Of a stretch of DNA of 64,000 nucleotides, positions 28,688 to 44,192 are shown one piece after another (positions within the stretch are counted from its first letter, which is position 1; the number at the start of each line of letters is the position of its first letter). The notes beneath the pieces are model-generated. The model was not told the DNA's origin, made no database searches, and was given only the letters and a program-made list of their open reading frames with translations. Both the position numbers and the translations under genes were made by a program. The stretch lies in sequence record AP018399.1; one strand, 5' to 3'.

Positions 28688-28776
28688 GGACTCGTTCCCA
28701 TAGCTGGCCGAATGGAGCGGACTCTTAATCCGACAGCGAAAGCTCATCGTAGGTTCGAATCCTACCGGGTCCACCA
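28688..28776 (+). tRNA. tRNA-Lys(CTT) with long variable arm
   Basis: acceptor GGACTCG/CGGGTCC, loop CT-CTT-AA, canonical T arm, ACCA. Confidence 0.8.
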
Positions 28777-28816
28777 AATTTTACGCACTGGCGCTTGCGC
28801 CGTGTGACACGTCTAA

Positions 28817-28893
28817 GGGACGGTAGCTCAACGGTCTAGAGCAATCGGCTTTTAACCGATAGGTTGTGGGTTCGAATCCCACCCGTCTCACCA
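28817..28893 (+). tRNA. tRNA-Lys(TTT)
   Basis: canonical cloverleaf. Confidence 0.95.
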
Positions 28894-28898
28894 ACAAC

Positions 28899-28985
28899 GG
28901 ATAGGTATGCAAGCGGTCAACGCAATCGGATTGTAAATCCGCCGCCTTAAGGGCTTCGAAGGTTCGAATCCTTCTCTATCCACCA
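28899..28985 (+). tRNA. tRNA-Tyr(GTA)
   Basis: canonical class II cloverleaf. Confidence 0.95.
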
Positions 28986-28989
28986 ATTT

Positions 28990-29061
28990 GGGCTTCACAA
29001 TCTATAGTGAGAACGCCGTAACTCGGCGCAGTCGGCGACTAGGTATCGCCAAAGTCCACCA
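28990..29061 (+). ncRNA. 72-nt cloverleaf with non-canonical loops, ACCA end
   Basis: GGGCTT/AAGTCC-ACCA; CGCCG-TAACT-CGGCG; GGCGA-CTAGGTA-TCGCC. Confidence 0.6.
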
Positions 29062-29066
29062 TCTTC

Positions 29067-29166
29067 GTCAACTAGTAGCTTAATAGGAAAGCGGCCGGGA
29101 GCGCCCGGTAATAGCACGAAACCCTTGTGGGTTAGCGATGTGGGCTGCGATACCCACCTAGTTGAC
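29067..29166 (+). ncRNA. 100-nt tRNA-like RNA with 9-bp terminal stem
   Basis: GTCAACTAG/CTAGTTGAC; D-arm-like GCTT-AATAGGA-AAGC; GTGGG/CCCAC T-like arm. Confidence 0.55.
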
Positions 29167-29239
29167 AATCTCTTCATCTTCCCCTACAATTTGCCTCGTT
29201 GTTTTAACCCTTTCATTTTAACCAACCAAGGAAATTACT

Positions 29240-30151
29240 TTGAAGAAGATTTTTACCCTGCTGTTTGCGTCCATCATGGCCCTGAGCCTGTCGGCCTGTC
29301 GTGGTGAACTGGTGGAAGTCCCGCCTGCCCACGTCGGCAAAATCATGACCAAGGACGGCTACCGCGAAGGCGTCATCGGTACCTCCAAGTTCCGCCTCGA
29401 CGTGTGCTACAACTACTGCGACAAGCTGGTTCTGCTGCCGGTCGCTGACCAAGCGAACATCGAAACCCTCGACATTTTCATGCCGCAGGACAAGCTCAAG
29501 CTCAAGGTCACCATCCGCACCAACCTGACCATCACCGACAAGAAGCAGATGGACTCGCTGTTCAACAGCGTTGCTCCTACCGAGTCGGAAGAGAGCCAGA
29601 AGGTTGCCCGCATCGGCCGCGATATCGTCTACAAGACCTATGCGCAGCAGATTATCCAGACCGAAGCTCGCGAATACCTGAGCCAGTTCACCATCGCCGA
29701 AGTCGCAAGTTCGATGGAGAAGGTGAATGCTGACCTGTCGGCCCGTCTGTCGAAGGCCATCAAGGAACGCACCCCGTTCAACGTTCGCTACGTCGGCATC
29801 ACTGGTATCGAATACCCGGCCATCATCACCGAAGCGCAGGAAAATGCTGCGAAGCGTCGTGAAATGATTGAGCAGGAAAATGCGCAGAAGCAGGTTGACC
29901 AAGTGAAGCTGGAACGCCAGTTGAACGAAGCTCAGTTGCAGCGCAAGATTGACGTGGAAAAGGCGGAAGCCGATGCCGAAGCTGACCGCATTCGTGCCGT
30001 CGCTGCCAACAACCCGGCCGTCATCAAGCTGCGTGAACTGGAAAATGAGCGTGCATGGATTGACGCTTGGAAGGCTGGTGGTTCGCAAGTCCCAAGCGTC
30101 GTGACCGGTGAGCAGGGCAGTAACTTCCTGATGCAGATGCCGAAGAAGTAA
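29240..30151 (+). CDS. SPFH/band-7 lipoprotein
   Basis: lipobox LSAC, VPPAHVG, coiled-coil C-terminus. Confidence 0.85.
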   Translation: MKKIFTLLFASIMALSLSACRGELVEVPPAHVGKIMTKDGYREGVIGTSKFRLDVCYNYCDKLVLLPVADQANIETLDIFMPQDKLKLKVTIRTNLTITDKKQMDSLFNSVAPTESEESQKVARIGRDIVYKTYAQQIIQTEAREYLSQFTIAEVASSMEKVNADLSARLSKAIKERTPFNVRYVGITGIEYPAIITEAQENAAKRREMIEQENAQKQVDQVKLERQLNEAQLQRKIDVEKAEADAEADRIRAVAANNPAVIKLRELENERAWIDAWKAGGSQVPSVVTGEQGSNFLMQMPKK

Positions 30152-30258
30152 TCCCGCACAGGGGAATGCAGAAAAGGGAGCCGAAAGGTTCCCTTTTTTG
30201 TTGACACAAGTTCTACATCTGGTATAATTCCCTCATCATCAACGGAGAAGTTCAACAC

Positions 30259-30678
30259 ATGGTTCTGTTCCTCAATTACCTGCCGTACCTCATCATCGCT
30301 CTGGGTCTGTTCCTCTGCTACCGTGCCAGCGTCAAGCACAAGGGCACCGACAAGGTTGGCAAGAGAATCGTCCTCTGGCTGGCCCTGACCATCGTCGCTC
30401 TCATCGCCCTGCGTGCAGTGAGCAATGGATATCTCGGCAAGGCTGTCGGTGCGAAGCTGGAAACCCCGACCGTGGAAGAACTGGCTACCGAAGCCGAAGA
30501 AGCCGCCCCCATCAAGGACGTGCTGCGCAAGCCTGACCGAACGGCCGAAGAGTCCGACAAGCACTTCGCTGCTCTGACCGACTGGCGAGCCGACAAGGCA
30601 GCGCGGGAGAACCCGCCGAAGCCGGAACCGGAAGCCACTACGGAAACGCAGGAACTTCCACTCCCCGCCAAGCAGTAA
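30259..30678 (+). CDS. membrane protein (2 TM)
   Basis: hydrophobic N-terminus. Confidence 0.75.
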   Translation: MVLFLNYLPYLIIALGLFLCYRASVKHKGTDKVGKRIVLWLALTIVALIALRAVSNGYLGKAVGAKLETPTVEELATEAEEAAPIKDVLRKPDRTAEESDKHFAALTDWRADKAARENPPKPEPEATTETQELPLPAKQ

Positions 30679-30762
30679 AAATGAAGAGTCAAGTATCGAA
30701 AGGTACTTGACTCTTTCATTATGAACGGTTATAATTTCGGCCTACTCCAACGGAACACCGAA

Positions 30763-32424
30763 ATGACCGACCAGATTGACGACACCGCCGAACGCATCAA
30801 GAAGCTGCTGATTTCGTTGGTGGAAAGGCTCGGCCCGGATGCTGACCCGGATATGGTCGCCGAGATTCAGATGATGCGTGCGGCCGACATTATCAAGTCG
30901 CACCTGACCGATATCACCAAGGCCCGTACCATCGTGCTGACTGGCGATACGTCGCACCTGTCGGTTCGCAGCATCATCCAGCGCCTTGCGGATATCGACA
31001 AGCCGAAGCGGTACGACTTCCAAGACGACAACGTTCACGAACAGGAATTCCTGCGTGGCCTGCTGCATTGCGTCCCCAGCTACATCATGCGTGGCGACGT
31101 GACCAAGGAACAGGTCATGAATGCCATCGACGGCAAGGAATGGCTGGAACTGCCGGAAGGTCGTGAGTACAAGTGCTACGACTGTGCCCAGCCGCTCAAG
31201 GTGGCGTTCAAGGGCAATGAAGTCCGTATCACTGCCGAGAAGGTGTGCGAACACAATCACACGTTCACCATCGAAGTGGATTTCCCCACGGGTGAAGTCG
31301 TGTTCGATGACTGGCCGGCTCGTTTCTCGGAAGCCCGTGATGCTGGTTTCATCACCGAAACCGATGATGGCGAATCCATCAACTACCTCAAGGGCCAGCG
31401 TCAGAGTACGGACAACTATGCCAGTCAGCAGATTGTCCATCACAGCGTCGGCAACACCTGTCCCACGTTCTTTGTGAACAAGGAAACGGGTGCCATCCAG
31501 ATTGGTAGCCGCTGGGATGATGAGCAGGACGAACACGTCACTCCGGAAGGCATGGAGGATGTTGGTTCCTTCTGCACGGACCTGTGGTGGGTGACCATGC
31601 TCGACCGCAAGTTCTACGACACCATCGTGGGCAAGCTGCCGCAGCAGAAGTCGAAGAAGTATTACGACAAGGAACTGCACATCGCGCACATTCCTCCGGG
31701 CCGCTATCGCTTTACCTGCTATGGCCGCACGGAAGAAGACATGGATATGTTCATGACCGGTGAACGTATCGGCGATGCCAGCGATTTCATGCCGCCGTTC
31801 GACGTGCTGGCTTCGAAGCGTCTCATGACTCTGGACGAAGCCACGTTCAAGTACCTGTCGATGTGGGGTAAGCCGCGAGGCAATCCGCTGTCCGCTCGTT
31901 TCCGCTTCCTCGACTACGTGTTCAACACCATCGGCAATGGCCTGCGTTCGAAGGGCGAACTGTTCAACGCTTACAGCATCGCCAATGATGCCGTGGGTGA
32001 TGTGATTCCGCCTTCGGATGACCCGCTGGACAAGAAGAATCCCTATCCGAATTTCAAGAAAGAATACAGCACCATCTACAGCGTACCGCTGAAAGACATG
32101 CCTACGGATTGGCTGGAAGGCGTCTTGTGGTATTACGAAGAATGCAAGACCTACTTCGAAAATGGTGCGGAGGGCTATAGCTATGCCTACCCGTCAAAGC
32201 AAAACCGGGACGACGAACTCGCCAAGCACTTCGAAAAGTATCGCAAGGACGGACAAAGCGAAGAAGAATACTTCGCTGCGGTGTCCAAAGCATACGAATG
32301 TGAATTCCGGGGTGACATTCCGGATTTCCAAACCCGACGCTGGGAAAAGGAAAAGGCTCGCATCCTTGCTTTCATCAGCGACACCATGAAGTACATCAAG
32401 GAAGAGCTTGACACGCGAGGTTGA
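30763..32424 (+). CDS. large hypothetical protein (553 aa)
   Basis: long ORF; start placed after TTGACT-17-TATAAT promoter. Confidence 0.8.
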   Translation: MTDQIDDTAERIKKLLISLVERLGPDADPDMVAEIQMMRAADIIKSHLTDITKARTIVLTGDTSHLSVRSIIQRLADIDKPKRYDFQDDNVHEQEFLRGLLHCVPSYIMRGDVTKEQVMNAIDGKEWLELPEGREYKCYDCAQPLKVAFKGNEVRITAEKVCEHNHTFTIEVDFPTGEVVFDDWPARFSEARDAGFITETDDGESINYLKGQRQSTDNYASQQIVHHSVGNTCPTFFVNKETGAIQIGSRWDDEQDEHVTPEGMEDVGSFCTDLWWVTMLDRKFYDTIVGKLPQQKSKKYYDKELHIAHIPPGRYRFTCYGRTEEDMDMFMTGERIGDASDFMPPFDVLASKRLMTLDEATFKYLSMWGKPRGNPLSARFRFLDYVFNTIGNGLRSKGELFNAYSIANDAVGDVIPPSDDPLDKKNPYPNFKKEYSTIYSVPLKDMPTDWLEGVLWYYEECKTYFENGAEGYSYAYPSKQNRDDELAKHFEKYRKDGQSEEEYFAAVSKAYECEFRGDIPDFQTRRWEKEKARILAFISDTMKYIKEELDTRG

Positions 32425-32441
32425 TGGGTTATAATAAACCC

Positions 32442-32798
32442 ATGACCTACACCGTCCAATACGCAGACAAGAGTCGGCTTCCGACTCTTGTCGCTGCCTA
32501 CCAACTGGTTGACCAAGCTCTCAAGGGCTTGGCAATCACGAAGGATTGCGCGGTTACGCTCAATCGCTTCTACTACGACAATGAATTCTTCCTCTTCAAC
32601 TTCTCCGTGACGTTGAAGGGGACCAAGCCCTGCATGTACCTGCTTTCCATCCCCAATGACAGTGCGATGGGCATGATGGGCTGGACTATCCGCAGCAACA
32701 AGTGGAATGGTCAGCGGGAGCCAATCGACTCGCCTGCGTTGTCATTCGGCCACTTCATCCGCAAGACGGACCACGACAAGAACAAGAAGAAGAAATGA
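32442..32798 (+). CDS. hypothetical protein
   Basis: ORF. Confidence 0.7.
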   Translation: MTYTVQYADKSRLPTLVAAYQLVDQALKGLAITKDCAVTLNRFYYDNEFFLFNFSVTLKGTKPCMYLLSIPNDSAMGMMGWTIRSNKWNGQREPIDSPALSFGHFIRKTDHDKNKKKK

Positions 32799-33037
32799 AC
32801 ATCAACGAATACAAGAAGCGCAAGTTCCGTGAACTCAAGGCCAAGAAGAAGGCATTCGGCTTCGAACTATCGGTGCATGACCCGGCTTCCATCATCGCTG
32901 CCGCCAAGGCAATCGAAATGGCCGAATGGATGGACAAGGGCGTTCTGGTCGAATTCAAGACCGATTACAACGCGCGTGAACTGAAAATCTATACCGATAA
33001 CCCGGCTTTGGCTGGTGAAATGCGTCTTCTGTGTTGA
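32795..33037 (+). CDS. hypothetical protein
   Basis: coupled start. Confidence 0.65.
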   Translation: MNINEYKKRKFRELKAKKKAFGFELSVHDPASIIAAAKAIEMAEWMDKGVLVEFKTDYNARELKIYTDNPALAGEMRLLC

Positions 33038-33069
33038 CAAATCATTGCCAGTATGATTAAATACTGGTA

Positions 33070-33264
33070 ATGACAAACGAAAAAGACATAGCTACAAGGG
33101 TAGCTGAAAAAGAAGCTGAGATTGAACGTTACAAAGAAATCCTCCACCGGTACCTAACCGGACCCTCACGAACCACTCGCTGGTACAACAACGGCAAGGT
33201 TCATCTGGAAGAGCTAGAAGCAGAACTAGCTGAACTCAAAAAAGAACTTGACTCTCCAAGTTAA
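33070..33264 (+). CDS. hypothetical coiled-coil protein
   Basis: ORF track. Confidence 0.6.
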   Translation: MTNEKDIATRVAEKEAEIERYKEILHRYLTGPSRTTRWYNNGKVHLEELEAELAELKKELDSPS

Positions 33265-33304
33265 TCTGCTATAATTACCCAATCTTCCCAACAGGAACAC
33301 TTCA

Positions 33305-33616
33305 ATGCCTTGCAGTGATGGTGGTGTGGCGTATCCCCCGAGCAAAGAAGAACTGGCCGAGCGCGCTTTCATCAAGCGTGCCCCCGGTATGCTCTGCTCG
33401 GCCTGTCGTGCGCTGGAATCGTTCGGCTACGACTTCGACCTGAACCCGGAACTCGCCGACTGGTGGGCCAAGCACAAGGCCGAAGATGCCGAGCGTGAGC
33501 GCAAGGAACACGCCAAGCGACTGGAACTGGAACAGGTGAACGAAATCATCAAGAAGCCGTTCAAGAACCTGACGGCCGAAGAAAAGCGTCTGCTCAAGAA
33601 GCACAACTACCTCTAA
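33305..33616 (+). CDS. phage hypothetical protein
   Basis: MPCSD...LCSAC...WW..HKAED. Confidence 0.75.
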   Translation: MPCSDGGVAYPPSKEELAERAFIKRAPGMLCSACRALESFGYDFDLNPELADWWAKHKAEDAERERKEHAKRLELEQVNEIIKKPFKNLTAEEKRLLKKHNYL

Positions 33617-33625
33617 GGAACCAAC

Positions 33626-34165
33626 ATGAAATACATTCTCCTGATTCTCGCTCTGATGTTCTCGGCTCCGGTCTTCGCACAGCAGACCGAACAGCGCACT
33701 CCGAGCGAACAACTGAACGCTGAAATCGCTCAGATGAGCGATGCACAGAAGGCCGAAGCTCTCAAGGCCATCCATGCCGGTCAGTCCGATACTGCGGCCA
33801 AGGCTCGCGAGTGGATTGATATCGGCAATGGCCTCGGTGCTGGTCTGGCCGCTACCGCTGAAAAGCTGGGCGTGGTTGCCAACGACTTCGCCAAGTCTCC
33901 GGTCGGCAAGCTGGCAATGGTTCTCATCATCTGGAATTACATGGGTGATGACCTGTTGGGCGTCATCATCGGCTTCCCGATGCTGTTCCTCGGTGGCCTG
34001 ATGTTCGTCTACCAGATGCGCAAGACCTATGGCATCTACAACGAAAAGGGCAAGTTCATTCAGTACGACGTGGTTGCTCTGAATGACAGCCGTTGTGGCC
34101 CCGGTGTGTTCATGAGCATCGTGTTCGTCATCTACACCATTGTGTCGATTGTCGTCATCTGCTAA
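33626..34165 (+). CDS. membrane protein with signal peptide
   Basis: signal peptide plus 2-3 TM segments. Confidence 0.8.
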   Translation: MKYILLILALMFSAPVFAQQTEQRTPSEQLNAEIAQMSDAQKAEALKAIHAGQSDTAAKAREWIDIGNGLGAGLAATAEKLGVVANDFAKSPVGKLAMVLIIWNYMGDDLLGVIIGFPMLFLGGLMFVYQMRKTYGIYNEKGKFIQYDVVALNDSRCGPGVFMSIVFVIYTIVSIVVIC

Positions 34166-34171
34166 GATAAC

Positions 34172-34247
34172 GGCCCGTTAGCTCAGCGGTCAGAGCAAGA
34201 GCCTCTAAAACTCCGGGTCGTGGGTTCGAATCCCACACGGGCCACCA
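34172..34247 (+). tRNA. amber suppressor tRNA (CTA), A73
   Basis: loop CT-CTA-AA; acceptor GGCCCGT/ACGGGCC-ACCA. Confidence 0.85.
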
Positions 34248-34254
34248 ATCAAAT

Positions 34255-34330
34255 GCTTTCGTAGCTCAGCGGTCAGAGCAAGAGCCTCTAAAACTCCGGG
34301 TCGTGGGTTCGAATCCCACCGAAAGCGCCA
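34255..34330 (+). tRNA. amber suppressor tRNA (CTA), G73
   Basis: same 58-nt body; acceptor GCTTTCG/CGAAAGC-GCCA. Confidence 0.85.
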
Positions 34331-34370
34331 AGTTGTTGACAAACTCCCATCACTAAATTATACTTGTGCC

Positions 34371-34685
34371 ATGAACGAAATCATCCAGAAGATGTTCCCC
34401 ACTGGCACTCTCAATGGCCGTGGTGGTACCGAAGTGAACGGTCTGACCAAGGGCACGGTTCCGGCTGGTACCATTCTCAAGAGTGGACAGGACAAGTTCG
34501 ACAACAAGGGCCGTCGTGAATTCTACGCGGTCGAACTGGATGGGCATGTCGCGTACCTGCGAGTGTGCGAAGCATATCCGGGTAGTGGCTATGACGAATT
34601 CGCGGTTATACATCGCGTCGTCAAAGCCGAAGAGACGGAAGAAGTGAATGAAATTCTCAACACCGTTTCTCGTATGACCAGCTAA
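34371..34685 (+). CDS. hypothetical protein
   Basis: ORF with promoter. Confidence 0.75.
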   Translation: MNEIIQKMFPTGTLNGRGGTEVNGLTKGTVPAGTILKSGQDKFDNKGRREFYAVELDGHVAYLRVCEAYPGSGYDEFAVIHRVVKAEETEEVNEILNTVSRMTS

Positions 34686-34755
34686 AAAGTAGTTGACAAG
34701 TTCGATTTTTGTAGTAAAGTATCAATCTCGGTGACGGCATAGAGGCCACTCACTG

Positions 34756-34782
34756 GTTCTTTAACAACTTGAGCGGAAACAA
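34756..34782 (+). promoter_or_regulatory. rrn/nut-like boxA plus GCGGAAA hairpin, copy 1
   Basis: GTTCTTTAACAA then CTTG-AGCGGAAA-CAAG; related element at 36313-36347. Confidence 0.55.
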
Positions 34783-34783
34783 G

Positions 34784-34976
34784 TTCATAGACTGAACATG
34801 CCTCGGTAGGTCAGTATGGTGGCAACACCATCTGGGGATGAGGACATGCTAGGAACCAATATGCTTTGGATACGCAGTGGTCGTTCACTAGCCACGACTA
34901 CGGTATACGCTATCAGCACACAATATGCATTGAATGTGCGGCGATTTGAAAGCTAGAGGCGTGTTCAATCTATGAA
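34784..34976 (+). ncRNA. 193-nt structured ncRNA closed by an 18/19-bp stem
   Basis: TTCATAGA-C-TGAACATGCC pairs with GGCGTGTTCA-A-TCTATGAA; internal hairpins. Confidence 0.6.
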
Positions 34977-34980
34977 TTTT

Positions 34981-35105
34981 TGGTAGGTAAGCAAGTGGGC
35001 AACGTAAGACGGCAATGGTGTAGGTATCCGTGAGGTATCAGAGTACGGTTGAGTCTCCCAGAAACCGTTTCAACTTCGTGAGTTCGAATCTCACCCTACC
35101 AGCCA
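34981..35105 (+). ncRNA. 125-nt tRNA-like RNA with large insert in the anticodon region
   Basis: TGGTAGG/CCTACCA-GCCA, canonical T arm, Tyr-like D region. Confidence 0.7.
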
Positions 35106-35112
35106 ATTCTAT

Positions 35113-35177
35113 GCACAGGTTACTTGGAAGCATCCGGTTGCGCACCGTGATGGGTGGTTCGATACCACTTCTGTGCC
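35113..35177 (+). ncRNA. D-arm-reduced tRNA-like RNA (GCG loop), no encoded CCA
   Basis: GCACAGG/TCTGTGC; CGG-TTGCGCA-CCG; GGTGG-TTCGATA-CCACT. Confidence 0.55.
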
Positions 35178-35191
35178 GCGATTCGTATAGT

Positions 35192-35339
35192 ATTCTGATG
35201 GCGAAATAGGTAGACGCGGGGGTCTAGGCCAATATGGAGAAGGGAGCTAAACATTCCCTCTGCTGCTCATGGTCGGAAACTGCTGTGAAAGCGTTGCAGC
35301 AAAACGCTGACCGTGTGGGTTCGACTCCCACTCAGAAAT
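35192..35339 (+). ncRNA. Leu-type tRNA scaffold with ~97-nt core
   Basis: TGGCGAAATAGGTAGACGC D arm, GTGGG-TTCGACT-CCCAC T arm, TTCTGA/TCAGAA acceptor. Confidence 0.65.
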
Positions 35340-35351
35340 TACTATATAACA

Positions 35352-35418
35352 GTATGGTCGTAATCCCTTTAAAATGAAGGGCGTTCGGACGCGGGTTCGA
35401 TTCCCGCCACGTCCACCA
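35352..35418 (+). ncRNA. ssrA: tmRNA acceptor piece (circularly permuted gene)
   Basis: TTCGGAC-GCGGG-TTCGATT-CCCGC-CACGTCC-ACCA; pairs with GGGCGTG at 35533 including G3-U70. Confidence 0.85.
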
Positions 35419-35532
35419 CATGCATCTTATAGCCAGAACTGAATCTGGTAAGAGGTAGTCAGCCACATTGAACCTTTCAGTAGAGCGCTGACCTAAGTCG
35501 CATGTAGTAACCCGCTTTAGGGTGCAAGTGAT

Positions 35533-35760
35533 GGGCGTGCCAAGGTTTCGACGGGCGAAGATAGTGGAGAAGGCGACTAGCCAGAGTAGGCTCTAAAACT
35601 AAAACCTAAAGTAACTGCCAACGCAAATACTTTCGATTACGCACTAGCTGCCTAATCCCAAGCACATCCAGCACTTGGTCACCGAACGCTGGGCAATAGC
35701 AGTCCTTGGACTGTCTATTGTGAAACATCTTCTGGTTCAGCCAGCCTAGGCAAAAGACGC
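35533..35760 (+). ncRNA. ssrA: tmRNA coding piece; tag ANANTFDYALAA* at 35617-35655; 3' end approximate
   Basis: GGGCGTG..AAGGTTTCGACGGG 5' end, PK1 (AGAG/CTCT with TAGG/CCTA), tag ending YALAA. Confidence 0.85.
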
Positions 35761-35762
35761 AT

Positions 35763-37263: not shown

Positions 37264-37388
37264 AATTCAAAGAATTCAAGACAGATGTACACTGGACTGA
37301 ATCGTCATTAGCGCCCAAGGGTGCAGAGAGTTCCGCTAGTATCTCGCTGCAACGACGTTAATGAATGTTCGACTAGCTCCAAATTTGA

Positions 37389-37467
37389 CGCGCGGTACAA
37401 TCAATATCGGCAGATGGGCACCCTCATAAGGTGTCGGTTGGGAGTTCAAGTCTCCCCTGCGCTACCA
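37389..37467 (+). tRNA. tRNA-Met/Ile2(CAT)
   Basis: CT-CAT-AA loop, unpaired 1:72, ACCA. Confidence 0.8.
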
Positions 37468-37495
37468 AACCCGGATAGGGTAGCTCCCTATCCTT

Positions 37496-37554
37496 CGTAG
37501 GTGTGACCGGCTCTCATGAGGCTTGTCGGTTCTTGACTGAGCAACCTACAACCA
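37496..37554 (+). ncRNA. 59-nt mini tRNA-like RNA (CAT loop, no D arm)
   Basis: C-GTAGGT/ACCTAC-A-ACCA; GGCT-CTCATGA-GGCT; TCGG-TTCTTGA-CTGA. Confidence 0.45.
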
Positions 37555-37568
37555 ATTCGTAGTACAAT

Positions 37569-37653
37569 GGGCGTGTGGCGGAATTGGCAGACGCACTAGA
37601 TTTAGGTTCTAGCGCCGCAAGGCGTGTGGGTTCGACTCCCACCTAGCCCACCA
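37569..37653 (+). tRNA. tRNA-Leu(TAG)
   Basis: class II cloverleaf; two acceptor mismatches. Confidence 0.9.
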
Positions 37654-37829
37654 AACGTCGGTCGGTACCTTAAGCAAGTACCGCCAAGTTATCAGTGATT
37701 TGCCTAGTTTAAGCTGATGGCTCGCCGTGAAACAGTCGGATATTAAAACGGGTAGGGTGTCGCCGATAGACTAGTGAATCAGCTTGCTAAGGGCTGGGAA
37801 TCGAAACTGCTACTTAGCTTCCATTCTAT

Positions 37830-37904
37830 GGAGCATTCGTCTATCGGTTAGGACGCTAGACTTTCACTCTGGAAAGAGGGGTTCGACTCCCCTATGCTCT
37901 ACCA
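37830..37904 (+). tRNA. tRNA-Glu(TTC)
   Basis: canonical cloverleaf. Confidence 0.95.
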
Positions 37905-37908
37905 ACAC

Positions 37909-37939
37909 AGAAGCCCGCCTAGTGCGGGCTTTTCTTTTT
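37909..37939 (+). terminator. intrinsic terminator ending the RNA cluster
   Basis: AAGCCCGC/GCGGGCTT plus T-tract. Confidence 0.85.
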
Positions 37940-37970
37940 GCTATATAATAATTGGAACATAGGATTTCAA

Positions 37971-38336
37971 ATGGAATTATCCCCAATCCACCAATTATTG
38001 ATTCTGGGAACGCTGACGCTCATCGCCGTAGTCTCGGTGGTTTCGCTCGCCTATCAGATGTACTTCCTGCCCAAGAAGCGCAAAGCCTTCCTCATTAAAG
38101 AAATGGGACATTGCTTGCTGACTCGTGAGCAAATTTACGGTGCGGAACTCATCAACCACTGCCGAACCATCCTGCATAATATCGACATACATTGCAGTAT
38201 GAGAGAAGGATTCAAGATGGTCTACACATACGGCAAGTATGAGATAGGCGTCAACTGGTATCCTGTCAATGGATTGTTTGAGTTCACCTTCCCGGTCAAG
38301 TACGAAACGATTGCGAAAATTTACTATCCGACTTGA
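37971..38336 (+). CDS. membrane-anchored hypothetical protein
   Basis: N-terminal TM segment. Confidence 0.65.
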   Translation: MELSPIHQLLILGTLTLIAVVSVVSLAYQMYFLPKKRKAFLIKEMGHCLLTREQIYGAELINHCRTILHNIDIHCSMREGFKMVYTYGKYEIGVNWYPVNGLFEFTFPVKYETIAKIYYPT

Positions 38337-38386
38337 CAAACGAAGTTGATGGGTCTATAATTCTCATCATCAAGTCAGGACACACA

Positions 38387-38665
38387 ATGACCACTTACAA
38401 CGAAGAGTCGAGAGCGAAGATTTACGAGCAGTATCCGCAGAAGCCCCGTGAGCAGAAGCGCATCGGTGGCCTCATCGAAAACTGGTCGCTGGTTCCGTTC
38501 AATGGCGATGACAAGAAGCTGGTCATCGTGGGGTCGCTGAGTGGCGACAACTATTGGGACAAAGGCCCAATCCGTACTTCGCTCATCATGAGCATCAATG
38601 AAGATGAGACTGAGGCCGAAACCCTCAATACCATCTACAAGCTGGGCGTCAAGGCTTCGGCCTAA
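38387..38665 (+). CDS. hypothetical protein
   Basis: IRTSLI...ETLNTIYKL; promoter. Confidence 0.75.
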   Translation: MTTYNEESRAKIYEQYPQKPREQKRIGGLIENWSLVPFNGDDKKLVIVGSLSGDNYWDKGPIRTSLIMSINEDETEAETLNTIYKLGVKASA

Positions 38666-38691
38666 CGCCTAGGGTGGGGAGAGTCACTTTT

Positions 38692-38960
38692 CGCAGGTTA
38701 TGGCTCCCCACAAGAATGAAATCTGCCAGTTTACCGCCCCAAGCTCGTGCTGTGGCATGGTCACCGTATTTGACCGGTCTACCACTACAGCCGGACCGAC
38801 ACACTAGGACAACTCTCACTAATCCTAGGTAAAGCGGTCGCCCTGTGAGAAGGGAAAGGATGTACCGACAAGTAGCGGCTCCCTCGTGGAGTTTCATGGT
38901 TGCGAAGCCATGATACTAATGAAGCGCGAAATCAGGTACAGCCCGAGCTAGGTGGCTTGC
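38692..38960 (+). ncRNA. structured ncRNA candidate
   Basis: GCTCGTGCTGT (38743) pairs with ACAGCCCGAGC (38938); several internal hairpins; no codon-biased ORF. Confidence 0.4.
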
Positions 38961-39009
38961 ATTTGACCTTCTGGTTTGTTATAATCAAGACCAATCCAGA
39001 GGTACCGAC

Positions 39010-39738
39010 ATGAAAATCACATCAACGTGGCTCCTTACATCCGCTGCCCAAGTCGTCATCACGATTGCTGTGGGCGCGTTCATGCTGGTCAATGCCGCAG
39101 TGATTGGCTTCTATGTCATTGAAGGATATGGGAATTATCAGAAGAAGGAATCTGCGGACGTAATCCTCACCGGTCGCGTTCACACGTTCTCGTCTCTGGA
39201 ATTCACCACGAATCCGGCCGGTACCATGCGTACCTGCGTCGGGGTGACCGCTAGCAACGGTCGGATGGTGGTTCGCGAACTCGGTGATTGGGAAGGAAAC
39301 CTTCCGGCCGGTGACTTCTGTGGGCAGCTTTTCAGCGCCAGCAACCTCACCAACTGGAAGCATATGGCACCAACATCCAACGGCACCAGTGTGCTTGAGA
39401 AGGTGTTGTGGTCCATTGCTTTCTTCGTCGTGTTCATGAGTGGTGCGTATCTGGTGGCGTCGATTCCTGCCAATCTGGTGGCTATCGCATTGCCGGGACT
39501 GGCTCCGATTGCCAAGTTGATGGCGTTGGCGTTCACGCTTCCTGTGCTGCTGTTCTGGGCAGTGTTCGTCACCAGTGCATGGCAGTACCATCCGTCGTAT
39601 TGGAAGTCGCCTGACGGCTATGTGGTCGAGACTGAGAAGGTCTTCATCACGCGAGACAAGCGAGTGTTCACCGCTCCGGAAACGTTGTTCGGATGGACCT
39701 CAAGCAATACGATGCAAGAACGAAAGGTGTTCGAATGA
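39010..39738 (+). CDS. multi-pass membrane protein
   Basis: 3 hydrophobic segments. Confidence 0.75.
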   Translation: MKITSTWLLTSAAQVVITIAVGAFMLVNAAVIGFYVIEGYGNYQKKESADVILTGRVHTFSSLEFTTNPAGTMRTCVGVTASNGRMVVRELGDWEGNLPAGDFCGQLFSASNLTNWKHMAPTSNGTSVLEKVLWSIAFFVVFMSGAYLVASIPANLVAIALPGLAPIAKLMALAFTLPVLLFWAVFVTSAWQYHPSYWKSPDGYVVETEKVFITRDKRVFTAPETLFGWTSSNTMQERKVFE

Positions 39739-39938
39739 GTTTCTTCAAGTGGTATGACCGGCATCCGAAGAATCGGTTCTGGTTCACCATCGGTGTCATC
39801 GCATTCGTCCTGATTCCTCCTGTAGTGACATGGACGGCTCCGAAATCACTGACGTGGATTGCGATTCTGCTGAATGCTGGCATTGCAGTGCTGCATATGC
39901 ATAACTGGATGAAGTTGAAGCGTGGTTCCAAGTCGTAG
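39735..39938 (+). CDS. small membrane protein (TAG stop)
   Basis: two TM segments. Confidence 0.65.
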   Translation: MSFFKWYDRHPKNRFWFTIGVIAFVLIPPVVTWTAPKSLTWIAILLNAGIAVLHMHNWMKLKRGSKS

Positions 39939-40323
39939 AGAACAGCGCTTCTACAAGAAGGCCAGAGAAGCAAGCAGTCGTTCAAATCACTACAAGGCCA
40001 AGATTGGTGCGGTAATTGTCACAGGGAACTATGTCCTTTCAGAAGGGTGCAGCCGTGAGAAGAGCCATACAAGACAACACCGGTACGACCGTAGGATGAA
40101 GTACCACGGTGGTCAGTCGAAGCTTCATGCTGAGATTGACGCCCTTGTGTCATCTGGCCGTGTCGATTTGACTGGTGCCGAAATCTACATCTACAGGGAA
40201 GACAAGAAGGGTAATCTTGCCAACTGTAGACCTTGCGTTAGTTGTACACAGGCGTTGAAGGACGCTGGTGTGCGTCACATCTACTACACCCACAAAGAGG
40301 GGTTTGCTTATGAGCAGTTCTGA
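39922..40323 (+). CDS. cytidine/dCMP deaminase-family protein
   Basis: LHAEIDA...RPCVSC zinc motif. Confidence 0.8.
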   Translation: MVPSRREQRFYKKAREASSRSNHYKAKIGAVIVTGNYVLSEGCSREKSHTRQHRYDRRMKYHGGQSKLHAEIDALVSSGRVDLTGAEIYIYREDKKGNLANCRPCVSCTQALKDAGVRHIYYTHKEGFAYEQF

Positions 40324-40444
40324 TGCAGCGTTCCGTGAGAAGTTCATGAAGTTGATGCAATCACGGAAAGAAATGTCGCCGGAACAGTTGACAAGCGAAG
40401 ATGAGTTCGATAATATGGTCGAACTTGGTGATGCAACTGAGTGA
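40310..40444 (+). CDS. small hypothetical protein (44 aa)
   Basis: GAGGGG RBS. Confidence 0.45.
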   Translation: MSSSDAAFREKFMKLMQSRKEMSPEQLTSEDEFDNMVELGDATE

Positions 40445-40485
40445 TTTCACTCTAATTGCAACCACACTAAATAGTTTTACAATAT

Positions 40486-40562
40486 CCGGGTGTAGCGCAG
40501 TCTGGTAGCGCACTTGCTTTGGGAGCATGGGGTCGCAGGTTCGAATCCTGCCGTCCGGACCA
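40486..40562 (+). tRNA. tRNA-Pro(TGG)
   Basis: canonical, G37. Confidence 0.95.
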
Positions 40563-40573
40563 AATTCATAGTT

Positions 40574-40650
40574 CAGGGTGTAGCGCAGTCTGGTAGCGTG
40601 GCCGGTTTGGAGCCGGGCGGTCGTAGGTTCAAATCCTACCATCCTGACCA
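40574..40650 (+). tRNA. tRNA-Pro(TGG) with A37-G38
   Basis: loop TT-TGG-AG. Confidence 0.85.
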
Positions 40651-40693
40651 AAATTAAGGTATGTGTACCGGAACTACACATATGACGAACAAT

Positions 40694-40784
40694 GCCACTT
40701 TGCCTGAGTCCGGTCGATAGGAACTGCCTTGTAAGCAGTCGGGATAATACCCCATCGCAGGTTCAAATCCTGTGGGTGGCACCA
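40694..40784 (+). tRNA. tRNA-Thr(TGT) with long variable arm
   Basis: CT-TGT-AA loop; V arm GGG-ATAATA-CCC. Confidence 0.85.
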
Positions 40785-40792
40785 AATTCTAC

Positions 40793-40869
40793 AGGTCGGT
40801 AGTTCCAACGGCTAGAACGATGGACTCCAAATCCATGCGATGGGGGTTCGAATCCCTCCCGGCCTGCCA
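40793..40869 (+). tRNA. tRNA-Trp(CCA)
   Basis: canonical. Confidence 0.95.
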
Positions 40870-40876
40870 ATTTCTC

Positions 40877-41077
40877 ATGACGCTAAAGTTCTGGTTCAAA
40901 TGGAATGCACAGAAGGTCGCTGACCAACTGAACGAGCAATATCGTCAGTATGAGGACAACTGCTTTCCGTGGGAAGTACAGCGACAAGGTATTCGGTACT
41001 TGATTTTAAAGAAGTACCATGCTAATGTATCTGGAACGTACACAATAGCAGCATCAAAACGACATATAGGGGCGTAG
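40877..41077 (+). CDS. hypothetical protein (TAG stop lies inside tRNA-Gln)
   Basis: ORF. Confidence 0.5.
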   Translation: MTLKFWFKWNAQKVADQLNEQYRQYEDNCFPWEVQRQGIRYLILKKYHANVSGTYTIAASKRHIGA

Positions 41078-41142
41078 TACAGCGGTTAGTGCGCTTGACT
41101 CTGACTCATGAAACGGTGGTTCGAATCCATCCGCCCCTGCCA
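41068..41142 (+). tRNA. tRNA-Gln(CTG)
   Basis: canonical. Confidence 0.9.
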
Positions 41143-41148
41143 ATTCGG

Positions 41149-41424
41149 ATGACTACAATGAAATTTGAAGTTTCCAAGCGTTTCACTATCTACGGTCTGA
41201 ATGCACATGAACGAGAATTCATGTGTAATCTTCTCACCAAAGGCCAATACAACTGGTCCAATTGGGATAATGATACGTTCGCGGTCATCTTCCATGAAGG
41301 TTCGTTGCATACCATCCCCGAAGATGATGTGGTGAAGTTCCTGAACATTCTTGACCATCGTCGGAAGGTTCATATATACTTCGAATACACTGGCGACGGA
41401 CGCTTCAACATCATCGTCAAGTAA
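41149..41424 (+). CDS. hypothetical protein
   Basis: ORF between tRNAs. Confidence 0.65.
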   Translation: MTTMKFEVSKRFTIYGLNAHEREFMCNLLTKGQYNWSNWDNDTFAVIFHEGSLHTIPEDDVVKFLNILDHRRKVHIYFEYTGDGRFNIIVK

Positions 41425-41428
41425 CAAT

Positions 41429-41504
41429 AGGGGTTTAGCCAAGTGGTTAAGGCATGGGCCTTTGACTCCCAGACCGGTAGGTTCGATTCCTCCAACCCCT
41501 GCCA
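41429..41504 (+). tRNA. tRNA-Gln(TTG)
   Basis: canonical. Confidence 0.95.
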
Positions 41505-41544
41505 AACCAGTTGACAAATGAACTTGATGGGTTATAATTAATCC

Positions 41545-41751
41545 ATGAACATACATTCGTTGACCCATGCAGTATCGGTGACCAGCACCAAGGCGGATTG
41601 TCTGGACTTCCTTGGCCTTGACCACTCCACGCGGAACTTCCGGCTCATGTCGGATGCCATCAAGAAGCACGGCATCGACACCAGCCACTTCGTAGGAATC
41701 AAGGCTTCGGAGTACGTGGCACGCTTCAAACCAGTTGACAATCAGTTTTAA
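41545..41751 (+). pseudogene. N-terminal fragment resembling phage HNH homing endonucleases
   Basis: AV..TS..D.L..LGL.....N.......IKKHGIDTSHF.G pattern with no HNH domain following. Confidence 0.45.
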
Positions 41752-41980
41752 TCTGGTAAGATAACATCATCACATCGGGTAAGCCCTTCACTGACCAGTG
41801 AGTCCGAGGAAGGGAGAGAAAGCAGGCCGGGTTGTTGGGGGCGCTGCCGAAAAGAGGGAGAGACAGTGGCACGAATGAAGCAAATGCATCTGGATATCAT
41901 CGAAAGCCAAGAGGCTGACGAGGAAGGTATCATCAATGCGGTGCCAACTCCGGTTCCGTCTCCCGCACGGGAGGTCGCAA

Positions 41981-42229
41981 ATGCCGAAGTATCTCCTGAT
42001 TGATTCCACTTCGGTTTTCATTCCGGGCGACGAGCGTTCACGCACGAATCCCGGTCACGGATACCCCGAGCGGACGGAAACGTACCCGGTGTTGAAGTGG
42101 TTCGATACCGAGCAGCAAGTGCTGGAATATCTGGAAACGTGGGGTCGTAACATCAAAGACCCGCAGATATGGGAACTCGCTGGTAAAGTCAAACTGGAAG
42201 TGAAGACTACCTTGTCACTTTCCAAGTAA
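41981..42229 (+). CDS. hypothetical protein
   Basis: GGAGG RBS; GDERSRTNPGHGYP. Confidence 0.7.
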   Translation: MPKYLLIDSTSVFIPGDERSRTNPGHGYPERTETYPVLKWFDTEQQVLEYLETWGRNIKDPQIWELAGKVKLEVKTTLSLSK

Positions 42230-42235
42230 TATTCC

Positions 42236-42322
42236 GGGCATGTGGCGGAATTGGTAGACGCGGCAGACTCAAAATCTGTTGGTAGAAATACCGTGTCGGT
42301 TCGATTCCGACCTTGCCCACCA
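42236..42322 (+). tRNA. tRNA-Leu(CAA)
   Basis: class II cloverleaf. Confidence 0.95.
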
Positions 42323-42336
42323 AACAAGAGAACGCA

Positions 42337-42726
42337 ATGAAGATTTCCTTCCGTACTGCTGTCATGATTGCCATCGCTGTTGGTGTCGCGGGAAGCCTGC
42401 TTCTCCCCGTCAATGCGAAGGCTCAGGATGTTATCAGCCAGACCAACGCCACCATGATGGCGTTCCAGCCTGCGATGACTGCCGACACCAGTTCCAGCAA
42501 GCCCACAACGCCGCCTCCGGCCAAGCTGTACCGTGAGCGCGTACCGGGTAAGCCGGAAGAAGGATTCGTTCCTGTGACGGCTCCGGTGAAGAAGAACTAC
42601 CAGTACACGAGGGTGGACTATCCCTACGGTGAAGTTCTCATCTTCGAAGACTTCGTTCGTCGCAATGTGTGCTACATCACCATCAATAACGGTCGAATCT
42701 CGGAATCCTGTGTTCCCATGAAGTAA
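42337..42726 (+). CDS. secreted hypothetical protein
   Basis: signal peptide. Confidence 0.7.
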   Translation: MKISFRTAVMIAIAVGVAGSLLLPVNAKAQDVISQTNATMMAFQPAMTADTSSSKPTTPPPAKLYRERVPGKPEEGFVPVTAPVKKNYQYTRVDYPYGEVLIFEDFVRRNVCYITINNGRISESCVPMK

Positions 42727-42735
42727 GGAAAACAA

Positions 42736-43107
42736 ATGAAAACTGCACTAAAGGTTCTGGGTATTCTGGCTCTGGTTTTCTTCTTGCTGGTCGGCGGCTG
42801 CACTATGCTGGTCATGATGACACCAAAAAAGCCGGTTGTAGCCGAAGTAAAGAAGGATGCCATCGACCAAACTCGTGATATCGTGAATTTCACGTACAGT
42901 GCTGCCAAGCAGTGTGAAAAATACGGCGATGGGTCTAGCTCATGTAGTCTGTTTAAGAACCAAACACGTAATCGGGTAATTCGTGATATCATCTATGCTC
43001 CGGCTGTTCCGGGTGAAGTGATGGCTGAATTCAATAAGCGCGGATACTTCACCGAATATACCGAACAAATGTTGTATATTGAAGCTGTCGATAAACATCT
43101 TCGATAA
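42736..43107 (+). CDS. membrane-anchored hypothetical protein
   Basis: N-terminal TM segment. Confidence 0.7.
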   Translation: MKTALKVLGILALVFFLLVGGCTMLVMMTPKKPVVAEVKKDAIDQTRDIVNFTYSAAKQCEKYGDGSSSCSLFKNQTRNRVIRDIIYAPAVPGEVMAEFNKRGYFTEYTEQMLYIEAVDKHLR

Positions 43108-43108
43108 C

Positions 43109-43183
43109 GGGCCGGTAGCATATGGGTAAATGCGTCCGACTCATAATCGGTTGAGCAAGGTTCGATTCCTTGACGGCCCACCA
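43109..43183 (+). tRNA. tRNA-Met/Ile2(CAT)
   Basis: CT-CAT-AA loop. Confidence 0.9.
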
Positions 43184-43201
43184 AACTAAATAGGTTTACA
43201 C

Positions 43202-43278
43202 GGTAATATAACTCAGCCCGGTAGAGTAGCGCCCTCATAAGGCGTTTGTCGCAGGTTCGAATCCCGCTATTACCACCA
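43202..43278 (+). tRNA. tRNA-Met(CAT)
   Basis: canonical. Confidence 0.9.
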
Positions 43279-43326
43279 AGATTTATCTTGACAGCCTCAA
43301 ATGAGGCTGTTATAGTTTTAGAACAT

Positions 43327-43415
43327 GACGCGGTGCCGGAGTCTGGTTGAACGGGATGGACTGCAAATCCATAAGCGAAAGCTCATCACAGGTTCAAATC
43401 CTGTTCGCGTCTCCA
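43327..43415 (+). tRNA. tRNA-Cys(GCA) with long variable arm
   Basis: CT-GCA-AA, U73, V arm AAGCGAAAGCTCATC. Confidence 0.85.
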
Positions 43416-43420
43416 AATAC

Positions 43421-43570
43421 GGGGTGTTAGGGAATTGGAAAACTCGCCGGAAGTAATCCGGTAGCTTGTGATAAGGTTGCAACCACCGAAATCGACTGCA
43501 TTCTAGAACGTAGTCACTAGTAGGTATCATGATAGCTTGACTTTGGTTCGAATCCAGAGACACCCCACCA
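43421..43570 (+). ncRNA. 150-nt tRNA-like RNA with ~78-nt branched variable region
   Basis: GGGGTGT/ACACCCC-ACCA, D arm, GCCGG-AAGTAAT-CCGGT, TTCGAAT T loop. Confidence 0.75.
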
Positions 43571-43591
43571 ATTCACAACAAAGGAAGTAAG

Positions 43592-43861
43592 ATGTTCGCT
43601 CTACTGAGAAAGAAGTTCGGCACTGCTGCTTTCGTGTTCCCGCTGATGGCGCTCATGGGCATCGTCTTCCATGTGGAGCCGAAGGATATCCTGCTGGGTT
43701 CCGTCCTGATGTACATCGTTACGCTCGCTCTGCTGATGCTGGACGACGTGTTCGTGTTTGAATTCGCGGACAATGGCGCGCTTCTGAGCGAGGAAGAGCT
43801 TGTCGAATTTGACAAGCTGGTTTCACCTGTACAAGTTACAGTGGAAGTGCAATACAACTAA
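43592..43861 (+). CDS. membrane protein
   Basis: two TM segments. Confidence 0.7.
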   Translation: MFALLRKKFGTAAFVFPLMALMGIVFHVEPKDILLGSVLMYIVTLALLMLDDVFVFEFADNGALLSEEELVEFDKLVSPVQVTVEVQYN

Positions 43862-43881
43862 ATAGCTTTACAAGGTGGGAT

Positions 43882-44091
43882 ATGAAGAAAATCAAGGGGT
43901 TGTTCGGGAAGTATCCCGTCGCTGCTAACTCTTCATCGTATTTCGCCGCAACATTCGTTGGAACCGGTGCAGTAGCTACCGTATTCAATCGACCGATAGA
44001 AGAAGCAATCTTCATATCAGTCATCATGGCCGTAACGGGCGGTGTAATTGGATGGGTAAAAACTGTTGACAAAGACGGTGAAAGCGAATAA
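43882..44091 (+). CDS. membrane protein
   Basis: two TM segments. Confidence 0.6.
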   Translation: MKKIKGLFGKYPVAANSSSYFAATFVGTGAVATVFNRPIEEAIFISVIMAVTGGVIGWVKTVDKDGESE

Positions 44092-44103
44092 GATACAAAC
44101 TTC

Positions 44104-44192
44104 GGGTCGGTCGCATAGTGGCCGAGTGCAACGGGCTGTTAACCCGTCGAGTTAATACTCCATCGCTGGTTCGAATCCAGCCCGGTCCGCCA
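44104..44192 (+). tRNA. tRNA-Asn(GTT) with long variable arm
   Basis: CT-GTT-AA, G73; V arm GAGT-TAAT-ACTC; G3-U70 pair. Confidence 0.85.

Follow-up and report, generated by a model that had tools for sequence, protein, structure and literature searches.

The 64,000-nucleotide (nt) stretch of DNA analyzed here (hereinafter the window, that is, this stretch at its full length) belongs to the genome of Xanthomonas phage XacN1 (AP018399.1, 384,670 bp; megablast; the window position is the record position minus 1875) and lies within the 65.9-kb direct terminal repeat that carries the tRNA genes of this jumbo phage (PMC5852040). In the window, ARAGORN called 28 tRNA genes and a permuted transfer-messenger RNA (tmRNA) gene; the gene order of the array to which they belong (Table 1) is common to the phages Xoo-sp13 and RAS14. 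Five of the tRNAs, with the anticodons CTT (Lys), TCC (Gly), TGT (Thr), GCA (Cys) and GTT (Asn), for which they are the only genes that ARAGORN finds in XacN1, contain a long variable (V) arm of the kind that, by the textbook rule, is limited in bacteria to the tRNAs for Leu, Ser, Tyr and Sec. A single phage breaks the class I/class II rule for five amino acids.

Table 1. The tRNA array of XacN1 and its five long-arm tRNA genes (window positions)
Feature	Length	Position	Strand	V arm position	V arm length	V arm	Position 73	Source or content
tRNA array with all five long-arm genes		28073..47523	+					28 ARAGORN tRNAs, tmRNA, GOLLD RNA, two degenerate tRNA-like genes
tRNA-Lys(CTT)	89 nt	28688..28776	+	28734-28748	15 nt	C AGC GAAA GCT CATC	A73	ARAGORN
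tRNA-Gly(TCC)	86 nt	37178..37263	+	37222-37235	14 nt	A CTCA GAAA TGGG C	U73	ARAGORN
tRNA-Thr(TGT)	91 nt	40694..40784	+	40740-40756	17 nt	C GGG ATAATA CCC CATC	A73	ARAGORN
tRNA-Cys(GCA)	89 nt	43327..43415	+	43373-43387	15 nt	A AGC GAAA GCT CATC	U73	ARAGORN
tRNA-Asn(GTT)	89 nt	44104..44192	+	44148-44164	17 nt	C GAGT TAAT ACTC CATC	G73	ARAGORN

Architecture of the five tRNAs

The features that a first-pass annotation had read from the sequence of the window were confirmed: V regions of 14 to 17 nt are present in all five genes (ARAGORN), four of these regions (Lys, Thr, Cys and Asn) end in CATC, AGCGAAAGCTCATC is exactly common to the Lys and Cys tRNAs, and the discriminator base fits the identity in each case (Table 1). 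The V regions are all built in the same way, with 1 unpaired nt followed by a stem of 3-4 bp, a loop of 4-6 nt and a 3' tail; in the Gly tRNA, the stem comprises 4 bp and the tail is a single C, without CATC. A GAAA tetraloop caps the hairpin in three of the five (Lys, Gly and Cys). The gene lengths of 86-91 nt are due to the long variable region. The five conform to the elongator cloverleaf, with a 7-bp acceptor stem, a 5-bp T stem, U8, A14, G18G19, U33, a purine at position 37, a TTCRA T loop and a 3' CCA that is encoded in each gene; the acceptor/T branch is 7/5 throughout. All five score above the Rfam tRNA threshold of 29 bits (63.8 for Gly, then 54.4, 53.2 and 46.9, and 32.4 for Lys), and the extra hairpin is predicted from energy alone in 5/5 (RNAfold), with z-scores of -0.5 to -1.5 that are unremarkable and not informative for these tRNAs. 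The tRNA-Lys shows two oddities, namely, a three-nt spacer from the acceptor stem to the D stem, with one more nt than usual following position 9, and a G.A opposition at 27:43, both of which are conserved in the copy from Xanthomonas phage X1.

The V arm is not the only part of these molecules that differs from class I. The D arms of the five are of the class II (Tyr-like) type, with a weakened last stem pair and the loop A-G-(Y)-G-G-Y-Y-G-A, close to that of the XacN1 tRNA-Tyr, whereas the remaining class I tRNAs of the phage have the usual GCTC...GAGC D arm. Because the D arms differ too, the distinguishing unit is the whole class II-type core. The long variable hairpin, the D stem that is weak at 13:22 and the D loop of the A-G-Y-G-G-Y-Y-R-A type are shared with bacterial tRNA-Tyr and class II tRNAs, and the short V stem (3-4 bp) followed by several unpaired 3' bases is seen also in the phage's own tRNA-Tyr (3 bp and TTC); the 3' tail is usually 4 nt (CAYC) in the phage class, compared to 3 nt in Tyr and 1-2 nt in Ser and Leu tRNAs. 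Thus, the five have the hairpin-forming V arm of at least 10 nt that is typical of class II, as indicated by ARAGORN, RNAfold and covariation, and, unlike class II tRNAs, they lack a Leu, Ser or Tyr anticodon and identity set: anticodon, discriminator and acceptor pairs correspond instead to Lys, Gly, Thr, Cys or Asn in each case. As a working definition of the class, we used a cognate identity set combined with a V region consisting of 1 nt, a 3-4 bp stem, a mostly GNRA loop and a CAYC tail, and a D loop A-G-(N)-G-G-Y-Y-G-A. The Lys, Thr, Cys and Asn tRNAs possess all these features; the Gly tRNA shares the D arm and the GAAA hairpin, but its tail measures 1 nt and its stems correspond to those found in ordinary Gly-TCC tRNAs of phages. 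The structure, conservation, identity elements, distribution and mosaic history of the five genes, the latter three described below, leave little doubt that these are real phage tRNAs.

Amino acid identity and decoding

The identity elements of the five tRNAs are G1-C72, C2-G71, G3-C70, U73 and C35C36 for Gly; G1-C72, C2-G71, A73 and G35U36 for Thr; A73 and U35U36 for Lys; U73 and GCA for Cys; and G73 and GUU for Asn, sets that we take to be cognate by the established E. coli identity rules. Given that XacN1 encodes no aminoacyl-tRNA synthetase (PMC5852040), the five tRNAs, if used, must be charged by host enzymes. They probably are used in translation. The tRNAs of phage phiKZ, as a group, co-sediment with 30S fractions (PMC8545117), and metatranscriptome contigs of XacN1 relatives, which may be DNA-derived, span the Cys gene. 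If host synthetases charge all five tRNAs, LysRS, AsnRS, ThrRS, GlyRS and CysRS tolerate a large arm, which bears on identity rules and on the engineering of orthogonal tRNAs.

An arm of this kind might instead recruit SerRS, LeuRS or TyrRS, such that Lys, Gly, Thr, Cys and Asn codons would be partly read as another amino acid. Precedents, which are also among the nearest published cases, are the nev-tRNAs of nematodes (PMC3333845) and the allo-tRNAs of bacteria (PMC5389517), which, like the XacN1 five, combine a long arm with anticodons other than those for Leu, Ser and Tyr. The anticodon is not read by SerRS or LeuRS, and A73 in the Lys and Thr tRNAs and G73 in the Asn tRNA are compatible with such recruitment. 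Unlike the five, however, nev- and allo-tRNAs retain the identity of Leu or Ser tRNAs and are either mischarged or not used, and the acceptor/T branch of allo-tRNAs is 8/4 or 9/3. The V stems of 3-4 bp with a 4-nt 3' tail that prevail among the five also differ from those of the phage's own Ser tRNAs (6 bp and 1 unpaired 3' base) and Leu tRNAs (4 bp and 1, with a GAATTGG D loop). The five lack what SerRS, LeuRS and TyrRS recognize: there is no Ser-type stem, no Leu-type D loop and no GUA anticodon, which TyrRS requires; Gly and Cys carry U73; and, in all five, the discriminator and acceptor pairs fit the synthetase that corresponds to the anticodon. In the XacN1 study, virion proteins were identified by mass spectrometry, presumably with the standard code in the search. 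Since the same codons are also read by host tRNAs, a partial mistranslation would not be visible in the genome; all things considered, we regard mis-decoding as highly improbable.

A widespread structural class in phages

The five tRNAs are members of a widespread, phage-enriched structural class. A scan of IMG/VR with a pattern that consisted of the CATC tail joined to the common T arm yielded at least 120 stretches, in which at least 50 tRNAs with class I anticodons, mostly Lys, Thr, Asn, Cys and Pro, have a V region of at least 10 nt and the CATC tail; from IMG/VR, at least 230 unique long-arm class I tRNAs were collected, originating from 219 loci. The V helix is maintained as a helix: in an alignment of 55 sequences, compensatory changes are found at 3/3 pairs and 84% of the cells are paired, as in the other cloverleaf helices, and the three stem pairs appear in the same register in 67% of the 133 unique tRNAs with a CAYC tail, compared to 8.6% after shuffling. 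The loop is GAAA, GTAA or GCAA in 54 of these 133. Among viral tRNAs, long arms are most common in Cys, Thr-UGU, Ile-UAU, Lys, Val and Asn tRNAs and least frequent in Gly, Ala, Arg, Pro and Phe tRNAs; the majority of phage tRNAs of the long-armed isotypes have a short loop.

The same design is present in model phages. Phage phiKZ has an 87-nt long-arm tRNA-Asn, with the V arm variant TGGCGAAAGCCCACC, next to a tRNA-Asn of normal length; phiCbK has two long-arm tRNA-Lys genes, and the V arm of its Lys-CTT is identical to that of XacN1; and phage X1 has long-arm Lys-CTT and Asn, each alongside a short-arm copy. That phiKZ (Asn) and X1 (Lys-CTT and Asn) retain a short-arm copy with the same anticodon suggests that the long-arm form adds something. 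Same-isotype relatives of the XacN1 genes are found in unrelated phages, for Lys in X1, BUDD, phiCbK and IMG/VR, for Asn in Xoo-sp13 and IMG/VR, for Cys in Xoo-sp13 and IMG/VR locus L086, and for Thr in loci L071 and L014. The closest relative of the Thr tRNA is the long-arm Thr of L071 (81%); a BLAST search of this gene against cultured phages retrieved XacN1 only, and its relatives surfaced only in IMG/VR. No close long-arm relative of the Gly tRNA was detected among the collected phage long-arm tRNAs. Compared to phiCbK and phiKZ, XacN1 stands out by its five isoacceptors, including Thr, Cys and an atypical Gly, by the lack of an adjoining homing endonuclease and by slot-by-slot turnover between short and long arms among syntenic relatives (see below); its five genes are the largest long-arm set in a cultured phage that we encountered in this analysis. 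The long-arm genes for Lys in phiCbK and Asn in phiKZ are annotated in GenBank without comment, a search of the literature on long or extra variable arms in phage tRNAs retrieved no description of class I tRNAs of this form, and the XacN1 paper (PMC5852040) does not mention variable arms. Apparently, then, this class of class I phage tRNAs on class II bodies has not been described previously.

The IMG/VR loci contain further designs. In several of them (e.g., L044, L065, L068, L070, L116 and L222), tRNA-Ile(TAT) has V arms of 22-25 nt with a conserved CAGATTA-like loop, and a family of tRNA-Val(TAC) has 16-nt V regions. The converse also occurs: 72 of 161 viral tRNA-Leu have a short variable loop.

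Occurrence in cellular genomes

To compare phages with cellular organisms, one identical pattern was run on viral contigs and on one genome per prokaryotic species, a comparison of which only the ratios are meaningful. The pattern (TTAA...CAYC...) turned out to be less specific than intended, in that TTAA in D loops admitted ordinary Gln, Cys and Glu tRNAs, which accordingly serve as internal short-arm controls rather than as counts. Among the matches listed, the viral contigs yielded 91 long-arm Lys/Asn tRNAs against 21 short-arm controls, and the prokaryotic genomes 15 against 91. Furthermore, 12 of the 15 long-arm genes listed from genomes are located in 8-kb stretches with 8-34 tRNA genes, resembling phage arrays.

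The exception comes from three assemblies within the Actinomycetota, namely, an uncultured Actinomycetota, a Frankiales and a Mycobacteriales metagenome-assembled genome (MAG). Each has a long-arm tRNA-Lys(UUU) (L186 5179-5263, L194 2977-3061 and L195 1157-1243), which is the only Lys-UUU gene found there. In L186, the neighboring genes are ordinary (DsbA-like, PPK2 and an oxidoreductase; Pfam); L194 and L195 were judged to be chromosomal solely from the presence of 1-2 tRNAs per locus. A fourth assembly, a Pseudonocardiaceae MAG found via L196, has a short-arm Lys-UUU. Because the long-arm gene is the sole Lys-UUU gene found in the three assemblies, the cellular LysRS presumably accepts a long-arm tRNA. 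The confinement of bacterial long arms to Leu, Ser, Tyr and Sec, from which the first-pass annotation proceeded, therefore applies as a statement of rarity in bacterial genomes and fails as a strict rule in the three Actinomycetota chromosomes.

Mosaic history of the long-arm genes

Xoo-sp13 (from Xanthomonas) and RAS14 (from Stenotrophomonas) are distant jumbo-phage relatives of XacN1 that share its tRNA gene order, which provides a natural experiment, with the same slots occupied by either short-arm or long-arm versions. Long-arm genes fill 0/5 of the slots in RAS14, 2/5 (Cys and Asn) in Xoo-sp13 and 5/5 in XacN1; the comparison is unrooted and carries no direction, short to long or long to short. 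The stems of the XacN1 genes match both kinds of relatives. The anticodon stem of the Thr tRNA is identical (10/10) to that of its syntenic short-arm counterpart in RAS14, and 0/83 background Thr-TGT tRNAs are as similar; the anticodon stem of the Cys tRNA matches the short-arm Cys of RAS14 at 8/10 positions (0/79 background tRNAs reach this level), and the acceptor stem of the Asn tRNA matches the short-arm Asn of RAS14 at 11/14 (4/131). The T stems of the Cys and Asn tRNAs are each identical (10/10) to those of the corresponding long-arm tRNAs of Xoo-sp13. Since the XacN1 genes are mosaics of short-arm and long-arm stems, the core moves, or is rebuilt, inside resident genes.

The other two genes appear to have different histories. 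The Lys gene and the X1 copy are 91% identical and show compensatory substitutions in all three of the D, V and T stems; their similarity ends exactly at the gene borders. The stems of the Gly tRNA are best matched by short-arm phage Gly-TCC tRNAs (28/34 stem positions), and no long-arm tRNA matched them. Close relatives of the region are present in soil, groundwater and wastewater metagenomes, and the insertions and deletions that could be seen affect the V loops of Thr and Asn, with a 2-nt deletion within the V loop of Thr in metagenome relatives and V-arm insertions or deletions of Asn in a groundwater relative. In the XacN1 lineage, long-arm versions would have replaced ordinary short-arm genes slot by slot, through patchy gene conversion for Thr, Cys and Asn, acquisition of a whole gene for Lys, and remodeling of a Gly tRNA.

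The first-pass annotation had proposed a portable V-arm module grafted onto several isoacceptors. The mosaics in syntenic slots bear out a transferable unit, which, however, consists of the D arm and the V arm, often together with the T arm, rather than the V hairpin alone. Nor is this unit an innovation of XacN1: the Lys, Thr, Cys and Asn tRNAs belong to families that extend across unrelated phages. A purely local graft of a single V hairpin is ruled out by the altered D arms and by the homologous long-arm genes in other phages. A homing-endonuclease cassette, as at the phiKZ tRNA-Asn, was also rejected for XacN1: a Pfam search of 20 annotated open reading frames (ORFs) around the five genes identified no HNH, GIY-YIG or LAGLIDADG domain.

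In the syntenic array of RAS14 (L349), an HNH homing endonuclease (2280-2862) is located directly upstream of tRNA-Gly, and a 134-nt 'tRNA-OTHER' (9225-9358) is annotated between the Thr and Trp genes.

Possible functions of the class II-type core

Tentatively, we favor the possibility that the long-arm tRNAs decode normally and resist defense nucleases that cut the anticodon stem; evasion of anticodon nucleases appears plausible. For an evasion of modification requirements, which the first-pass annotation had also suggested, the analysis yielded no evidence either way. We infer the charging, translational use and nuclease resistance of the five tRNAs as successive steps of the following scheme. 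Host synthetases would charge each tRNA with its cognate amino acid, and decoding would be normal; the bulky arm would project from the core directly behind the 3' strand of the anticodon stem and, along with the altered D arm, would make these tRNAs poor substrates for tRNA-cleaving defense enzymes of the host (tRNases) that grip and cut this stem, such as AriB of PARIS, with its cut at 40|41, or OLD-type Toprim enzymes, so that phage translation could survive while the host Lys, Thr and Asn tRNAs are destroyed. The substrates of PARIS AriB are Lys-UUU, Thr-UGU, Asn-GUU and Thr-CGU. It breaks them between positions 40 and 41, on the 3' side of the anticodon stem and only a few bases short of the V region, and phage T5 evades PARIS with variant tRNAs of its own (PMC12409363). 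In Thr-UGU, P2 OLD severs the anticodon stem on both strands, and its targets further include Lys, Asn and Val-UAC tRNAs (PMC12445682). Of the XacN1 tRNAs, Thr-UGU and Asn-GUU match these targets. Among viral tRNAs not selected with a pattern, isoacceptors targeted by AriB or OLD are long-armed in 15.2% of the cases compared to 6.7% for other class I tRNAs (odds ratio 2.5, Fisher p = 3e-5), in a test that is uncorrected for relatedness and uses loci chosen for holding a long-arm tRNA. The tRNA repair pair Pnkp/Hen1 of XacN1 is a sign of pressure from tRNA-cutting enzymes.

Like XacN1, phages with nuclease-resistant tRNAs, such as T5 with its Lys, Thr and Asn tRNAs against PARIS and phages with a Thr tRNA against P2 OLD (PMC11464382, PMC12409363, PMC12445682, PMC10264068), carry copies of isoacceptors that tRNases destroy (Thr-UGU, Asn-GUU and Lys). 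The XacN1 Thr and Asn tRNAs differ from the UAAUC|A site at position 39. Unlike the known resistant tRNAs, which retain the class I shape and have point changes in the anticodon stem or loop, the XacN1 five have the whole core rebuilt, and their resistance is putative. In a more specific and rather doubtful version, the class II-type core (D arm, GNRA-capped V hairpin and CAUC tail) would be a transferable armor that enters resident genes by short-patch recombination, slot by slot, rendering the attacked isoacceptors uncuttable yet chargeable, a counter-defense based on shape, unlike escape by point mutation. If the arm does block defense tRNases, it would constitute a new kind of phage counter-defense.

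Several observations weigh against nuclease resistance as the function of the arm. Cys and Gly are not known targets of AriB or OLD, and the long-arm Lys tRNA of XacN1 has the anticodon CUU, whereas AriB prefers UUU. The UAAUC site is kept in 53% of the long-arm compared to 35% of the short-arm tRNAs (pooled), a weak trend that is confounded by ancestry. Long V arms can themselves be attacked: tRNA-Tyr is cleaved within this arm by both retron-Eco7 and Septu PtuAB (PMC13096335). Finally, in three Actinomycetota, a long-arm Lys-UUU serves as a normal gene of the chromosome, so that the design need not concern phage defense.

The same distribution over isotypes could reflect a need for stability, the class II-type core being a sturdier body that lets quickly made, perhaps under-modified phage tRNAs, mainly the isoacceptors for A/U-rich codons, fold and escape general decay. 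The ranking from Cys, Thr-UGU and Ile-UAU down to Arg, Pro and Phe and the prevalence of stable GNRA tetraloops are in line with this explanation, and fast tRNA turnover in a long infection cycle has been raised in the XacN1 paper (PMC5852040); the unremarkable z-scores of the five and the short loops with which these isotypes manage in most phages are not, and we consider it unlikely. A neutral or selfish history, in which a Tyr-like class II scaffold has spread, either through duplication, switches of the anticodon and gene conversion or by traveling in mobile cassettes, with the arm merely tolerated, has its own support in the relationships among the genes. The XacN1 Lys-CTT and the phiKZ long-arm Asn are 85.5% identical over the anticodon, V and T arms, and their anticodon arms are near-identical, differing only at position 34 and the last base, which shows anticodon switching on one scaffold; the closest neighbors of the Cys, Asn and Thr tRNAs include long-arm tRNAs of other isotypes; an HNH endonuclease gene adjoins the phiKZ long-arm Asn; and the Lys gene is common to X1 as a discrete unit. 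Yet none of the five XacN1 genes is next to an endonuclease domain, in many unrelated phages the arm has persisted through compensatory changes, a single lineage had five separate slots converted, and some phages hold short-arm and long-arm copies together; we consider this history, too, unlikely. The arm and D arm could also mark the tRNAs for an enzyme of the phage itself, i.e., Pnkp/Hen1 repair or the CCA-adding enzyme, or exempt them when the phage directs an attack at the tRNAs of its host. Among the proteins of XacN1 are Pnkp, Hen1, a CCA-adding enzyme and Thg1-like proteins (PMC5852040), and the motif is conserved in both sequence and shape (CAYC tail and GNRA loop); nevertheless, such a tag would be present on 5 of the 28 tRNAs only, the design is found in phages with very different gene sets, and no phage tRNase is known here, so that self-marking seems very unlikely.

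Other features of the tRNA array

A 2.5-kb stretch of the array that is left unannotated in GenBank contains two further RNA genes. The permuted tmRNA is located at window positions 35302-35746 and encodes the tag ANANTFDYALAA; a full-length GOLLD RNA (227 bits) occupies positions 36695-37108 and ends 70 nt upstream of the long-arm tRNA-Gly. Of the two tRNA-like genes of the array, the one at 28407-28515 (109 nt, Rfam tRNA 45.6 bits) is unannotated, has the acceptor stem and discriminator of the XacN1 tRNA-Phe along with normal D and T arms, and contains about 50 nt in place of the 17-nt anticodon arm; it is probably the 'pseudogene' of the XacN1 paper. The same slot in Xoo-sp13 (L348, from 5821) holds another aberrant tRNA-like gene, with a V region of 25 nt. 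The other, at 37390-37462, is a weak Rfam tRNA match (31.3 bits); its anticodon loop has CAT, its T arm is good and its D arm is degenerate, and it is neither called by ARAGORN nor annotated in the record.

Two amber-suppressor tRNAs (CTA; 34172-34330) have identical D, anticodon and T arms and entirely different acceptor stems, with A73 in one and G73 in the other; because of these differences in the acceptor stem and discriminator, the two may take different amino acids. The tRNA-Ile(GAT) at 44734-44809 has C33 instead of the near-universal U and U1-A72 as the first pair; its orthologs in Xoo-sp13 and RAS14 likewise have U1-A72 but keep U33. Also inside the array, ORF093 (40096-40323, annotated as 75 aa) aligns with the cytidine/deoxycytidylate deaminase zinc-binding domain over the C-terminal half of that domain only (Pfam, 29.1 bits) and may be a truncated or mis-started deaminase gene.

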